This document shows positions 24,991-31,802 of a stretch of 64,000 bases of DNA, piece by piece. Position numbers and translations under genes: made by a program. How positions within the stretch are numbered: position 1 is the stretch's first letter; each line of letters begins with the position of its first letter. This DNA is from Macrostomum lignano (taxonomy: Eukaryota): NCBI GenBank assembly GCA_002269645.1, contig NIVC01000598.1, forward strand, positions 718,286-782,285, written 5' to 3'. The notes below the pieces were generated by a model. It did no database searches. It was given only the letters and a program-made list of their open reading frames with translations, and was not told where the DNA came from.

Positions 24991-25404
24991 TTAGTCCTGT
25001 TTAGCAGCCGCATCGGGCACCTCTTTACCAGTGCCGCCCTCCCAGAAGGCGAAGAACACGAAACCGGCCAGGATGATGTGCACGGTAACCACGGCAACAA
25101 TGGCCGCGTAGATGTAGCTCTGACGCGGCGCGATAGACAGAAAGCCTAAATCAATTCGGAAATGCAAATACAATTTTTACTACTTTTAAGTAGGTAAAGA
25201 GTTTAAAAACGAAAAATTAAAATACCAACCTTCAAATAGAAGCGATTTAGTGATGAAGTACAGGGTAATAGGCAATACGATGAGCAGCAGGCTGAATGTG
25301 ATGAGCACTTTCGCTACTGTGCCCAGCTGCTGCTGCTGCTGACGAATCGCCTGCACGTCCGGCTGGAGGGCGCCGGGCCCGGCTGCTGCTAGTGGCTTCT
25401 GCAT
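24991..25404 (-). CDS. VMA21: V-ATPase assembly factor VMA21, 109 aa; exons 25404-25230 and 25145-24991
   Basis: Two hydrophobic helices (KVLITFSLLLIVLPITLYFITK and YAAIVAVVTVHIILAGFVFFAF), C-terminal KQD as in human VMA21, and an 84-bp GT-AG intron (GAAG/GTTGGT...TTTAG/GC) that preserves frame. Confidence 0.9.
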
Positions 25405-25473
25405 TGCGCTTAGGTAGGCTGGAATTGTGCAGCGGCGACTGCTGTGTAGCTGGGTGGGTGCAGAGGGCTGGGC

Positions 25474-25826
25474 TGTCTGTCTATCTATCTATCTATCTAT
25501 CTATCTATCTGTCTATCATCTATCTATCTATCTATTTATCTATCTATCTATTTATCTGTCTATGTATCTATCTATCTATCTATCTATCTATCTATCTATC
25601 TATCTATCTATCTATCTATCTATCTATCTATCTATCTGTCTATCTATCTATCTATCTATCTATCTATCTGTCTATCATCTATCTATCTATCTATTTATCT
25701 ATCTATCTATTTATCTGTCTATGTATCTATCTATCTATCTATCTATCTATCTATCTATCTATCTATCTATCTATCTATCTATCTATCTATCTATCTATCT
25801 ATCTATCTATCTATCTATCTATCTAT
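25474..25826. repeat. (TATC)n microsatellite with an internal duplicated variant block
   Basis: Direct sequence. Lies between the calcineurin-B-like gene and VMA21. Confidence 0.98.
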
Positions 25827-26049
25827 TCAGTTTATTTTTATCTGGTAAAGCTGTTCATTAAGAACAAAGTACTATAGAAATAAATCAGAGATTTTTTATT
25901 AAAATGACATGATCAGAATAAAAATGGAATGCACAAGTTAACTATATCAAAGTTGAATCACAGTTTTATCAAAATTTGAGCAGATTATCTAAGAAAGTCA
26001 CTGAAAATCAAACATCACGCCCGCAGTAGATACTACTATCGCATAACTA

Positions 26050-27110
26050 CTAGTTATAGTGCAAATCGGCGGTTAGTTTTTGAAAAACCAACAAATCGCT
26101 AACCATAGCCGAGAAGAAATACTCCCTAGTGAGCTCGGGCTCCAGGCCGGCCGGTTTCGGATCGGCGGCGGCCAGAGCCGATTCAACTAGGTCAAGCAGC
26201 TGATCATCTGCGAGGTTGCCGCCCACGGTGGCGGATAGGAATCTAAATAGGCCGGCCCGCCGCACTCGACCAGTCTGGTGGGGGTCCAGCACGCGCCAGA
26301 GCAGGTCGCGTTTCTCCTGCACGCTGGCCTGGCTGGATAGCAGCCAGACTAACCTGACGAATCGGTCAACATCGAGGCGGCTGGTGGAGCCGGCGACGGC
26401 CTTGGCAGCGAGCGTAAGCAAACGATTGCCCTGCGGCAGATGGCGAGGGATATCAAGGGATGGTGACATAGTGAGATAGGACTTCAGTGAAGTCTCAAGA
26501 TTTCTCAGTGAAGAGATAGCATCTTGGGGTTAAGACACTATCTCTAGGGTGAGATAGAATCTTAGGGATGAGACAGGATCTATATGCGTGAGACAGGATC
26601 TATATGCGTGAGACAGGATCTTAAAGGTGAGACAGGATCTTAGGGTGACATAGGATTTTAGGTATGAGACAGGATCTTAGGAATAAGATAGAGTCTTAGG
26701 TATGAGACAGGATCTTAAAGTTTAGACAGGATCTTAGGGTGAGATAGGATCTTAGGTATGAGACAGGATCTTAGGAATGAGACAGGATATTCGGAATGAG
26801 ATAGGATCAGTATGAGTCAGTAAAAGGGGATCTCAAAATGAGCCATTAAGTATCTCAAGGGGAGTCAACAAAAGCATATCAGAGTGGAGACGGAATGCCA
26901 GACACCCAGCGAATACTTAAAGCGCACCTGCATTTCAGTGCATTTTCCAGCCAGATCTTCGTACCACACACCGGCAGTGTGGTTTCTGCTCCTATCCAAT
27001 TGGCGGTACTTGGCCAACACTTGGTTGACTTCCTCTTCCGTGTAGCTGCAGAACCGGCTGTAAGCCTGCAGCTGTTGAGGCGTTGCGCGAAACACGGAGT
27101 GACCTTCGGC
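26050..27110 (-). CDS. Divergent calcineurin-B-like EF-hand protein; exons 27110-26928 and 26430-26050; no in-frame ATG found
   Basis: The spliced translation AEGHSVF...CSYTEEEVNQVLAKYRQLD...EMQ/GNRLL...QEKRDLLWRVLDPHQTGRV...LFRFLSATVGGNLADDQLLDLV...FQKLTADLHYN* aligns by eye over the full length of calcineurin B (CSHFDADEIKRL...ELQQNPL...EQKLRFAFRIYD...MMVGNNLKDTQLQQIV...KKMVVDV). Splice sites are CAG/GTGCGC and CCGCAG/GGC, both phase 0. Confidence 0.8.
26470..26810. repeat. Degenerate minisatellite of about 20 bp (GAGACAGGATCTTAGG core), intronic
   Basis: Recurrent GAGACAGGATC motif inside the calcineurin-B-like intron. Confidence 0.8.
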
Positions 27111-27174
27111 CTGAAATTTGAATATTAAAATTTCTGCGATGCAAACATTGGAACTCAATCAATCTGTTCTTGAT

Positions 27175-29262: not shown

Positions 29263-29353
29263 CTTAATAGTCGACCTCTTGGGACCGCAGAGGAGGCCGG
29301 TAAAAAAGGTTAGGCAGCGACAGCAGTAGAGTGCTGAAAAAGGTTGCGTAGCT

Positions 29354-30212
29354 CAGGTGGAGAATATTAGCAGGTAGGAATGGGTCAGGTGGAGAATATT
29401 AGCAGGTAGGAATGGGTCAGGTGGAGAATATTAGCAGGTAGGAATGGGTCAGGTGGAGAATATTAGCAGGTAGGAATGGGTCAGGTAGAGAATATTAGCA
29501 GGTAGGAATGGGTCAGGTAGAGAACATTAGCAGGTAGGAATGGGTCAGGTGGAGAATATTAGCAGGTAGGAATGGGTCAGGTGGAGAATATTAGCAGGTA
29601 GGAATGGGTCAGGTGGAGAATATTAGCAGGTAGGAATGGGTCAGGTGGAGAATATTAGCAGGTAGGAATGGGTCAGGTAGAGAATATTAGCAGGTAGGAA
29701 TGGGTCAGGTGGAGAATATTAGCAGGTAGGAATGGGTCAGGTGGAGAATATTAGCAGGTAGGAATGGGTCAGGTGGAGAATATTAGCAGGTAGGAATGGG
29801 TCAGGTGGAGAATATTAGCAGGTAGGAATGGGTCAGGTGGAGAATATTAGCAGGTGGGAATGGGTCAGGTAGAGAATATTAGCAGGTAGGAATGGGTCAG
29901 GTGGAGAATATTAGCAGGTAGGAATGGGTCAGGTAGAGAATATTAGCAGGTAGGAATGGGTCAGGTGGAGAATATTAGCAGGTAGGAATGGGTCAGGTGG
30001 AGAATATTAGCAGGTAGGAATGGGTCAGGTGGAGAATATTAGCAGGTAGGAATGGGTCAGGTGGAGAATATTAGCAGGTAGGAATGGGTCAGGTGGAGAA
30101 TATTAGCAGGTAGGAATGGGTCAGGTGGAGAATATTAGCAGGTAGGAATGGGTCAGGTGGAGAATATTAGCAGGTAGGAATGGGTCAGGTAGAGAATTAT
30201 AGCAGGTGGGAA
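29354..30212. repeat. 32-bp minisatellite (CAGGTGGAGAATATTAGCAGGTAGGAATGGGT)
   Basis: Highly homogeneous tandem copies between RPL39 and COQ10. Confidence 0.98.
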
Positions 30213-30428
30213 TGGATTAATCCCAGTCTAATTAAGAGCACATCCTTCTTACAGTAAGCAGCTGTGCCTAGAAAAAAGAAATAAGAGAAAACCGAAATTC
30301 CAAATAAGATTCCGTCAACAATAAATTTTTTATTTGCTTCAAACAGACTTAAGCAAAATGTCAGCAGCCAGCTCAAACGATTCCACATATGCTACATCAA
30401 TCTGACGTCACGAAACAATCAATCCATA

Positions 30429-30584
30429 TTACAACCTCAGCTTAGTACGGCGCCAGTGCCGCCTTTTGGCATTGTACCGCACCGTGTTGCCATTGCGCAT
30501 GCGAACCCATTGCGGCACTGGCCGATTCACCTTCTGCTTTCGGGCCAGCTTAGTTTTCATGCGGAAAGTCTTGTGCGACGGCAT
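30429..30584 (-). CDS. RPL39: 60S ribosomal protein L39 (eL39), 51 aa, intronless CDS; absent from the ORF track because it is under 60 aa
   Basis: Manual translation: [57 protein letters not shown] on the minus strand at 30329-30334 and a TTTCAG acceptor 26 nt upstream of the ATG. Confidence 0.96.
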
Positions 30585-31802
30585 GTTGCTTTAGTAATTG
30601 ATAATCTGAGCTGAAATCTTTTTGATTTACTGATAATTAGCAGGATGGAACTCCATTTAAAAAATTAACAGATTGTACTTTGAAACAATAATGATTAAAA
30701 TGCAGGTCATGTACTTTTAATGACACCTGAGAAACATTTAGGCTTTCTTTTTGTCAGTTTTACAGTATTTTCTGCCTGTATTTGTTAAATTAAATTCCTG
30801 TAATGAACAAAACTGCCTTAGGTATGAAAGCCTATCACTCTCTGTCACCATATGAGATCCAGGCGTAACTTATGGACCTTTAGCTAGCGCCATGCTTTGA
30901 AACAGCTAGAAGTAAAGCACCATGCGATTGAAAGCTATTTTGTATCCCACTTGCCTTGACTTCATAGAGCTCCATAAACTGCACTGCAGCAGCTATGCAA
31001 GCAAAACAAGACCTACTATTGCTGTATTGTTACTGACATGGCACACTTAATTGTTACTGCCATCTTCTTCTAGATAGCACACTATGACCTAACATTTGCC
31101 TAATGTGGCTGCATGCTGTAAGTACTAGTTTGGGCTTTCTGGAGTTAATTTGCCTAATGCAAACTTTGAGTAATTAAAATATGGAATTCCACTGTAGGTA
31201 CGGATATGGCTATGGGAAGTTATGGATATTGAGGTTTTGGGCCAAGCATATGGATATAGTTATGGAAACATACTTCCCATATCTAGTTCCTGTATCTAGT
31301 AATACCACTCTTGAAAGACCATTGGAGCTGTTGATTTGATGGGGTTAGGGTAGTAGAAATAAATGAATGTTGCCAGTTTCAAATTCTCTGGAATTTAGGA
31401 CTCAAGCATCAACATAGATAGCCAATGCCATGTCCACATTATGGTTGAGTAAAAGGAGCTGGAGTTGATAGTTAAGATGAATGTTTTCACATTTTAAGGG
31501 GAGCTCTGATGCCACATGCACATTGTGGTTGGGTGGTGAGGGGTAGGGGCTAATGTTAAGATGAATGTTTTCATTTTCAATGTGAAGGGAGCTCTTAAGT
31601 CCTTAGAATTTGGGATTCAAGCAACAAAAGACAGAAAATTTTGACACTACTACACACACATTGGGATTGGAGTATTTTAATAAAATATGAAATTGGTGTT
31701 TACTATATCTCTTTCTAGCTCCTTTCTTAGAGACACAGGTGTTCAATAAAAATCATATAAAGAAACATTCTACCAGAAGTAAACATATTTATATATTGTG
31801 AT

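Follow-up and report, generated by a model that had tools for sequence, protein, structure and literature searches.

A probable spliced-leader operon with repeat-filled spacers in the flatworm Macrostomum lignano

Four unrelated small housekeeping genes lie head to tail on the minus strand of a contig of Macrostomum lignano, held apart from one another by long tandem arrays. They are RPL39, COQ10 (which encodes a coenzyme Q-binding START-domain protein), CnBL (a degenerate EF-hand gene of calcineurin-B-like type) and VMA21, and they emerge from an open reading frame (ORF) listing combined with a reading of the strand between positions 24500 and 31500 of the window – the 64,000-nucleotide stretch of NIVC01000598.1 (positions 718,286 to 782,285; assembly GCA_002269645.1) that was analysed. 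The question is whether these genes are co-transcribed and resolved into separate messages by spliced-leader (SL) trans-splicing, as a sequence-only reading of the window had proposed, or whether they are mere neighbours. Our analysis favours the former: the cluster is best viewed, at a probability of about 0.72, as an M. lignano SL operon with the order RPL39 > COQ10 > CnBL > VMA21. Co-transcription of at least COQ10 and CnBL is more likely than the full four-gene unit.

The biology that such a reading presupposes is documented genome-wide for this species (PMC8629364, PMC5730564). M. lignano has a single leader of 35 nt (CGGTCTCTTACTGCGAAGACTCAATTTATTGCATG, ending ...GCATG) and an acceptor motif of [T/C]TNCAG (Ustyantsev & Berezikov 2021, PMC8629364). 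Of its genes, 30% undergo trans-splicing and about 15% belong to operons, each of 2-9 genes, whose spacers are swollen by repeats; once the repeats are subtracted, distances peak near 100 bp (PMC8629364). The published operon rule demands adjacent genes on the same strand, uninterrupted by an opposite-strand transcript, with a repeat-adjusted distance of <1 kb (PMC8629364). About 7% of assembled transcriptional units are precursors with several trans-splice sites, which were cut into genes (Wudarski et al. 2017, PMC5730564). Rfam gave no SL RNA match in the cluster, nor does the window or any of the related loci described below hold a copy of the leader sequence; an SL RNA gene within the window is not needed for operon membership, the use of a leader by the organism being established by the literature.

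Gene order, spacing and acceptors

The identity of three of the genes is straightforward. RPL39 scores 70.8 bits against PF00832 (gathering cut-off 21.6 bits), as befits ribosomal protein eL39, and the identical protein occurs on three scaffolds of the Mlig_3_7 assembly. COQ10 reaches 62 bits against PF03364 (Polyketide_cyc/START), placing it in the COQ10 family; its top match outside Macrostomum is a cephalopod COQ10 homolog B (49% identity over 84% of the query), and the nearest annotated protein is BOX15_Mlig000057g2 [Macrostomum lignano], 99.5% identical. An exact look-up of the 213-aa COQ10 ORF returned no match, because the annotated COQ10 products are 5′-extended partial coding sequences (CDSs), whereas that of RPL39 succeeded. 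The spliced VMA21 product scores 59.8 bits against PF09446 (cut-off 29.5) and covers profile positions 2-64 of 64, a full-length match to a family of two-transmembrane proteins of ~100 aa. Together with the calcineurin B matches of CnBL (below), these profile matches confirmed the four identities put forward in the sequence-only reading.

Positions 20429-40584 of the window match scaffold NIVC01000598.1 of Mlig_3_7 (GCA_002269645.1) at 100% identity. Two further copies of the locus (L002, which is the same as L001, and L004) are 90-99% identical to the first, with all four genes present in unchanged order. VMA21 is intact on NIVC01000598.1 (24991-25404) yet uncalled there; the other two copies have it annotated. 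In the three annotated copies no further called gene falls between the four, and the plus-strand ORFs that lie between cluster genes are repeat-encoded only. The cluster also stands alone: in no copy is another gene called in the 10 kb upstream of RPL39 or in the roughly 4 kb downstream of VMA21. A fifth gene was sought beyond the 1.9-kb array that follows VMA21, and neither a Pfam match nor a convincing ORF was found in 21400-23060.

At face value the genes are not closely packed. The distances from poly(A) signal to the next acceptor are 995, 892 and 476 nt, taken in the order of transcription; with the arrays removed they shrink to 132, 266 and 125 nt, and the last of these becomes 94 nt if the alternative VMA21 acceptor is used. 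All fall below the 1-kb limit. Measured instead from stop codon to acceptor, with the arrays found by Tandem Repeats Finder (TRF) subtracted, the distances are 232, 884 and 280 nt. The gap between array and acceptor is 19-65 nt, the COQ10 acceptor being 19 nt from its array. The earlier claim that the spacers contain almost no unique DNA therefore holds insofar as the amount is small, but it is not zero: 94-266 nt of non-repeat sequence is left in each.

The second line of evidence comes from the acceptors. A motif scan and TRF placed the three AATAAA signals, the arrays and the acceptors ending at 29334, 27111 and 25419 exactly where the sequence-only reading had put them (Table 1). All three acceptors, plus a fourth at 30611 ahead of RPL39, match the published motif, and all four are conserved in the three copies with the sole exception of the COQ10 acceptor in L002. 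Against a minus-strand background of 2.56 YTNCAG and 0.72 AATAAA per kb, it is unlikely (~1e-5, a rough post-hoc estimate) that an acceptor should lie by chance 0-71 nt ahead of each of the four coding starts. The annotation points in the same direction: in every copy the annotated 5′-partial CDSs open 0-9 nt past the predicted AGs. For COQ10 the offset is +2 in L004, +5 in L002 and +8 in the window; for CnBL it is +9 in all copies; and for VMA21 the 113-aa NCBI models in L002 and L004 start at +2 after TTCCAG, these and COQ10 in L004 opening at the first in-frame codon. The UniRef models P0012, P0011 and P0013 start or splice instead at the CCCAG site of VMA21. At that site (25450) the leader ATG would share the reading frame of VMA21 and lengthen the protein by 16 residues.

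These offsets must be read with care given that annotated 5′ boundaries can be off by as much as about 8 nt. The imprecision is evident at an older RPL39 paralogue (Mlig003250g3), which has a clear TTCCAG acceptor 5 nt ahead of its ATG: its annotated CDS, labelled ‘partial’, overshoots TTCCAG by 6-8 nt and lacks the genomic ATG, from which it follows that 5′ boundaries are overshot.

The exceptional COQ10 acceptor deserves comment. In L002 (10926-10936, equal to L001:9988-9998 and corresponding to 29341-29331 of the window) the sequence reads ttttCATG|CAC in place of tttttCAG|CAC. The leader, too, has CATG at its 3′ end, and RNA-seq reads were used when Pilon polished the Mlig_3_7 assembly (PMC5730564). 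The change may be a polishing artefact from SL-bearing reads, in which case it would be an indirect footprint of trans-splicing; alternatively, it may be genuine, a mutation through which this copy has lost the acceptor.

The start of the calcineurin-B-like gene

CnBL differs from its neighbours in what it is and in how it begins. In a single-sequence phmmer search it matches calcineurin B chains in the PDB with an E value of 1.4e-6 over residues 21-184, and a profile of its family matches calcineurin B with an E value of about 1e-40, consistent with homology over the full four-EF-hand fold. We nonetheless class it, on sequence grounds, as a divergent CnB-like protein and not canonical calcineurin B, because none of the Pfam EF-hand models reaches threshold, the EF-hand loops that would bind Ca2+ are degenerate in the calcineurin B alignment and the predicted N-terminus is MAEG, not the MG of the N-terminal myristoylation motif.

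Exon 1 of CnBL has no usable initiator. The sole ATG in frame is codon 60 of 61, and 16 codons upstream of the acceptor the frame is closed by a stop. Joining the leader at TTTCAG|GCC (27111|27110) would set the terminal ATG of the leader in frame, to give MAEGHSVF... The reading frame itself is backed by alignments to calcineurin B and to 180-aa homologues, and in a library of 1.8 billion proteins homologues of 181-183 aa start with ‘MG’ at the position that aligns with the 27111|27110 junction; CnBL is therefore not missing an upstream coding exon. A weaker AG lies at 27105-27104, where the leader ATG would be out of frame; only at 27111|27110 is it in frame. The annotated CnBL start (+9) was considered as proof that the 27104 acceptor is used, and rejected: the annotation overshoots a clear acceptor at the RPL39 paralogue, removing a real ATG, and varies (+2/+5/+8) among the COQ10 copies. 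An upstream exon joined in cis and ending in ATG|GT may be the source of the start codon instead, for which there is a single candidate, at 27820.

CnBL is thus, to all appearances, a good candidate for obligatory use of a leader-donated AUG in translation. That a flatworm leader can provide the initiator methionine from its 3′-terminal AUG is already established (Cheng et al. 2006, cited by PMC12582326). The likeness is that CnBL has no ATG of its own and that the leader ATG would be in frame exactly at the start of the homologues; the difference is that here the case is made from sequence and is conditional upon the 27111 AG being used rather than the 27104 AG.

One transcription unit or several

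How would such an operon work? A lone promoter in the DNA beyond 30613, which is free of genes and upstream of RPL39, would drive a polycistronic precursor. Each upstream message would be cleaved and polyadenylated past its AATAAA, and each downstream message given its 5′ end by the 35-nt leader, trans-spliced at 29334, at 27111, and at 25419 or 25450; the arrays between poly(A) signal and acceptor would be transcribed and then discarded, while the leader's 3′-terminal ATG would provide the initiator methionine of CnBL. The single promoter, the use of the junctions and initiation at the leader AUG are those parts of the scheme that we infer. At the level of sequence and annotation, the indirect signs of trans-splicing of the downstream genes are the YTNCAG acceptors, the 5′-partial CDSs that open near AGs and the lack of an ATG in CnBL.

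Indirect evidence that genes of the cluster share a transcript comes from the annotation. On one scaffold COQ10 bears the name Mlig000057g2 and CnBL the name Mlig000057g3; elsewhere, in the two further copies, CnBL is called g7 and g8. The prefix of such names denotes a cluster, at 95% identity, of transcriptional units assembled from RNA-seq, units that the TBONE pipeline divides on the basis of SL and poly(A) signals (PMC5730564). COQ10 and CnBL are unrelated, so their common prefix means that an assembled transcriptional unit spanned both. The string ‘Mlig000057’ had no matches in the texts and supplements of the papers. CnBL and VMA21 are linked in another way: two UniRef entries, P0011 and P0013 (A0A1I8FZR4 and A0A1I8FZ78), are in-frame CnBL-VMA21 chimeras with the donor at 26104|26103 and the acceptor at 25450|25449. 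Chimeric gene models have been taken as traces of polycistronic precursors, and in flatworms cis- and trans-splicing widely use the same acceptors (Calvelo et al. 2025, PMC12582326). The protein clusters, which hold NCBI genome and UniRef members only, include no transcript-derived contig joining the leader to cluster exons.

Several observations weigh against a four-gene operon. The shared order in three copies is no evidence of selection, since the copies are recent duplicates, the duplicated state of the Mlig_3_7 assembly being already known (PMC8629364). VMA21 has a different prefix (Mlig034379), which leaves the names linking COQ10 and CnBL only; units are known to break in repeat-rich spacers, yielding separate prefixes (PMC8629364). 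Even the COQ10-CnBL link could come from multi-mapping repeat reads that bridge the spacer, the mapping of transcriptional units having allowed 1000 multi-hits (PMC5730564). The older RPL39 paralogue (L005:9700-10153, NIVC01001713.1) is flanked by genes for a protein kinase and an amino-acid permease, and the RPL39-COQ10 linkage is absent there. Internal promoters could reside in the unique DNA of each spacer (94-266 nt) or in the arrays. Finally, the annotated 5′ end of CnBL (+7 to +9) would suit the AG at 27105-27104 too.

The alternative that best survives these points is a smaller operon, in which COQ10 and CnBL, possibly with VMA21, are co-transcribed and RPL39 is a separate, conventionally capped gene. 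It draws on the annotation, which backs only the COQ10-CnBL pair, and on the different surroundings of the RPL39 paralogue; moreover, the leader ATG, if spliced at 30611, would open an 18-codon out-of-frame upstream ORF overlapping the RPL39 start. Yet the RPL39-COQ10 spacing, once repeats are removed, is as short as the others, and the 19 nt between array and COQ10 acceptor offer scant room for a promoter. Nor does capping of RPL39 speak against a four-gene operon: 18% of published M. lignano operons open with a gene that is not trans-spliced (PMC8629364), so a capped RPL39 is compatible with it. RPL39 may be the capped first gene of the unit, in which case the site at 30611 may be unused. 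On balance we regard the smaller operon as doubtful.

Less probable still is that the cluster comprises four separate transcription units, each with a compact promoter of its own and each individually trans-spliced, with the array lying in the outron. Many trans-spliced M. lignano genes are indeed monocistronic, and most (about 60%) lie outside assigned operons (PMC8629364). The unique sequence left in each spacer, the prefix peculiar to VMA21 and the GGGAATTCCC palindromes of the 31-mer array, which could bind factors, are all in keeping with independent control. This has to be set against repeat-adjusted spacings that fall in the ~100-bp mode published for operons, the one prefix common to COQ10 and CnBL, the CnBL-VMA21 chimeras and the mere 19-65 nt between array and acceptor. 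The flanks are also telling: at least 10 kb of gene-free DNA lies upstream of RPL39, compared with 0.5-1 kb between cluster genes. Separate units are, in our judgement, unlikely, and the SL operon accounts better for the locus.

The arrays themselves raise a further issue. In the sequence-only reading they formed part of an architecture repeated from gene to gene; their presence in every spacer stands, their status as an operon feature does not. Tandem arrays account for 32% of the whole window and 38% of the cluster, and the 64 kb contain 26 that are 200 bp or longer. Because coverage is similar window-wide and one array is intronic, they are best read as genomic background – neutral minisatellite or microsatellite insertions into short operon spacers, a view that the literature had put forward before – and not as a signature of gene boundaries. 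That the arrays are selected parts of the operon (insulators, processing pauses or internal promoters) is most improbable: they hold the same positions in all three copies, and at the RPL39 paralogue, likewise, a GATA array lies about 170 nt upstream of the acceptor, but recent duplication is expected to leave arrays in matching places, 15% of the M. lignano genome consists of simple and tandem repeats (PMC5730564), other arrays occur in gene-free DNA, and the units are unrelated to one another and vary in copy number between window, L002 and L004 (27, 17 and 44 for the 32-mer; 88, about 40 and 65 for GATA). We think it very improbable, too, that arrays conserved in position act as spacers or internal regulatory elements, for instance through the GGGAATTCCC palindromes, giving downstream genes partly independent control. 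Were the arrays functional, M. lignano would couple 3′ end formation to trans-splicing over kilobases, unlike the ~100-nt constraint of nematodes. A milder proposition, that CnBL depends obligatorily on the leader AUG, is more likely than functional arrays.

Further features, known systems and meaning of the locus

The features of the cluster are collected in Table 1. The perfect palindrome GGGAATTCCC, a kappa-B/Rel-type consensus, occurs about 20 times in the 31-mer units of 27176-27801, probably by coincidence. Over the window as a whole, 20.5 kb falls in 42 merged arrays with many unrelated units of 4-43 bp, several of which show strong GC and AT strand skew. In one of them (36858-37899; a 36-bp GC-rich unit, 28.6 copies) several frames stay open, on both strands, yielding ORFs of up to 482 aa; it represents either an artefact of the repeat or a coding exon that is itself repetitive. 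ORFs with RRM and Tudor domain matches (42567-44301, plus strand), on the opposite strand some 12 kb upstream of RPL39, probably belong to a divergently oriented multi-exon gene. Further on, a 530-aa ORF (47648-49240, plus strand) with PNMA/gag, zinc-knuckle and retroviral aspartyl protease matches represents a fragment of long terminal repeat (LTR)-retrotransposon type, flanked by a 43-bp array (49234-51193). The sole Rfam match in the window is a tRNA gene at 52499-52570 (plus strand; 30.4 bits against a gathering threshold of 29), directly after a 29-bp array.

Table 1. Coordinates of cluster features in the window (all on the minus strand; signals and splice sites are predictions)
Feature	Position	Strand	Details
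Candidate trans-splice acceptor TTTCAG, RPL39	30611..30616	-	26 nt upstream of RPL39 ATG; motif scan; kept in 3/3 copies
RPL39 CDS	30429..30584	-	51 aa, single exon; PF00832
AATAAA of RPL39	30329..30334	-	95 nt past stop; retained in all copies
32-bp array x27	29353..30215	-	TRF; RPL39-COQ10 spacer
Putative acceptor TTTCAG, COQ10	29334..29339	-	exon start 29333
COQ10 CDS	28621..29262	-	213 aa, single exon; PF03364
AATAAA of COQ10	28003..28008	-	613 nt past stop
31-bp array, about 20 degenerate copies	27176..27801	-	TRF; COQ10-CnBL spacer; with GGGAATTCCC palindromes
Putative acceptor TTTCAG, CnBL	27111..27116	-	exon start 27110; weaker alternative AG 27105-27104
CnBL exon 1	26928..27110	-	61 codons, phase 0; no initiator ATG
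CnBL intron (GT..AG)	26431..26927	-	contains 19-bp tandem array 26513-26808; splice sites agree with annotated 184-aa protein
CnBL exon 2	26050..26430	-	126 codons + stop
AATAAA of CnBL	25895..25900	-	150 nt past stop
GATA array x88	25476..25826	-	TRF; CnBL-VMA21 spacer
Two candidate acceptors, VMA21	25419..25454	-	CCCAG ends 25450 (exon start 25449); TTCCAG ends 25419 (exon start 25418)
VMA21 CDS	24991..25404	-	exon 1 25404..25230; phase-1 intron 25229..25146; exon 2 25145..24991; product 109 aa
Variant poly(A) signal AGTAAA, VMA21	24938..24943	-	48 nt past stop; canonical AATAAA absent there
31-bp array x61	23013..24907	-	TRF; immediately past VMA21, no annotated gene behind

How does the cluster compare with known systems? 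The M. lignano SL operons already published (PMC5730564, PMC8629364) share with it species, assembly, strand layout, acceptors, a single ATG-ending leader and spacers that collapse to about 100-270 nt; its four genes lie inside the published range of 2-9, and there is no difference in kind. The locus is not individually described in those papers. Operons of C. elegans resemble it in having a polycistronic precursor, 3′ end formation coupled to trans-splicing, unique spacing of ~100 nt and an enrichment of housekeeping genes, but they employ a specialised SL2 for downstream genes and have physically short spacers, whereas M. lignano has one leader and here, on account of the arrays, spacers of 0.5-1 kb (up to about 1.5 kb in L004). 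With parasitic flatworm operons (Protasio 2012; Tsai 2013; Calvelo et al. 2025, PMC12582326) the likeness extends to the leader's 3′-terminal ATG, to acceptors shared by cis- and trans-splicing and to chimeras such as CnBL-VMA21; those studies applied thresholds of 200-300 bp with no correction for repeats, which the cluster would fail unless its arrays were subtracted.

The cluster is thus an already known kind of feature: species, single leader, operons and repeat-swollen spacers are all published, and the genes are annotated. The proposal that the four genes form an SL operon gains support from adjacency, repeat-adjusted spacing, the acceptor motif, the COQ10-CnBL prefix and the in-frame leader ATG of CnBL. 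The locus also lays bare weaknesses in the annotation of Mlig_3_7, in that 5′ boundaries are placed a few nucleotides too far in, VMA21 goes uncalled on NIVC01000598.1 although intact, and RNA-seq polishing may have changed one acceptor. The single detail of bench interest is the apparent dependence of CnBL on a leader-donated AUG; to our knowledge M. lignano is the only flatworm with stable transgenesis. More broadly, the locus provides a clean worked example of how raw intergenic distance misclassifies operons in repeat-rich genomes.

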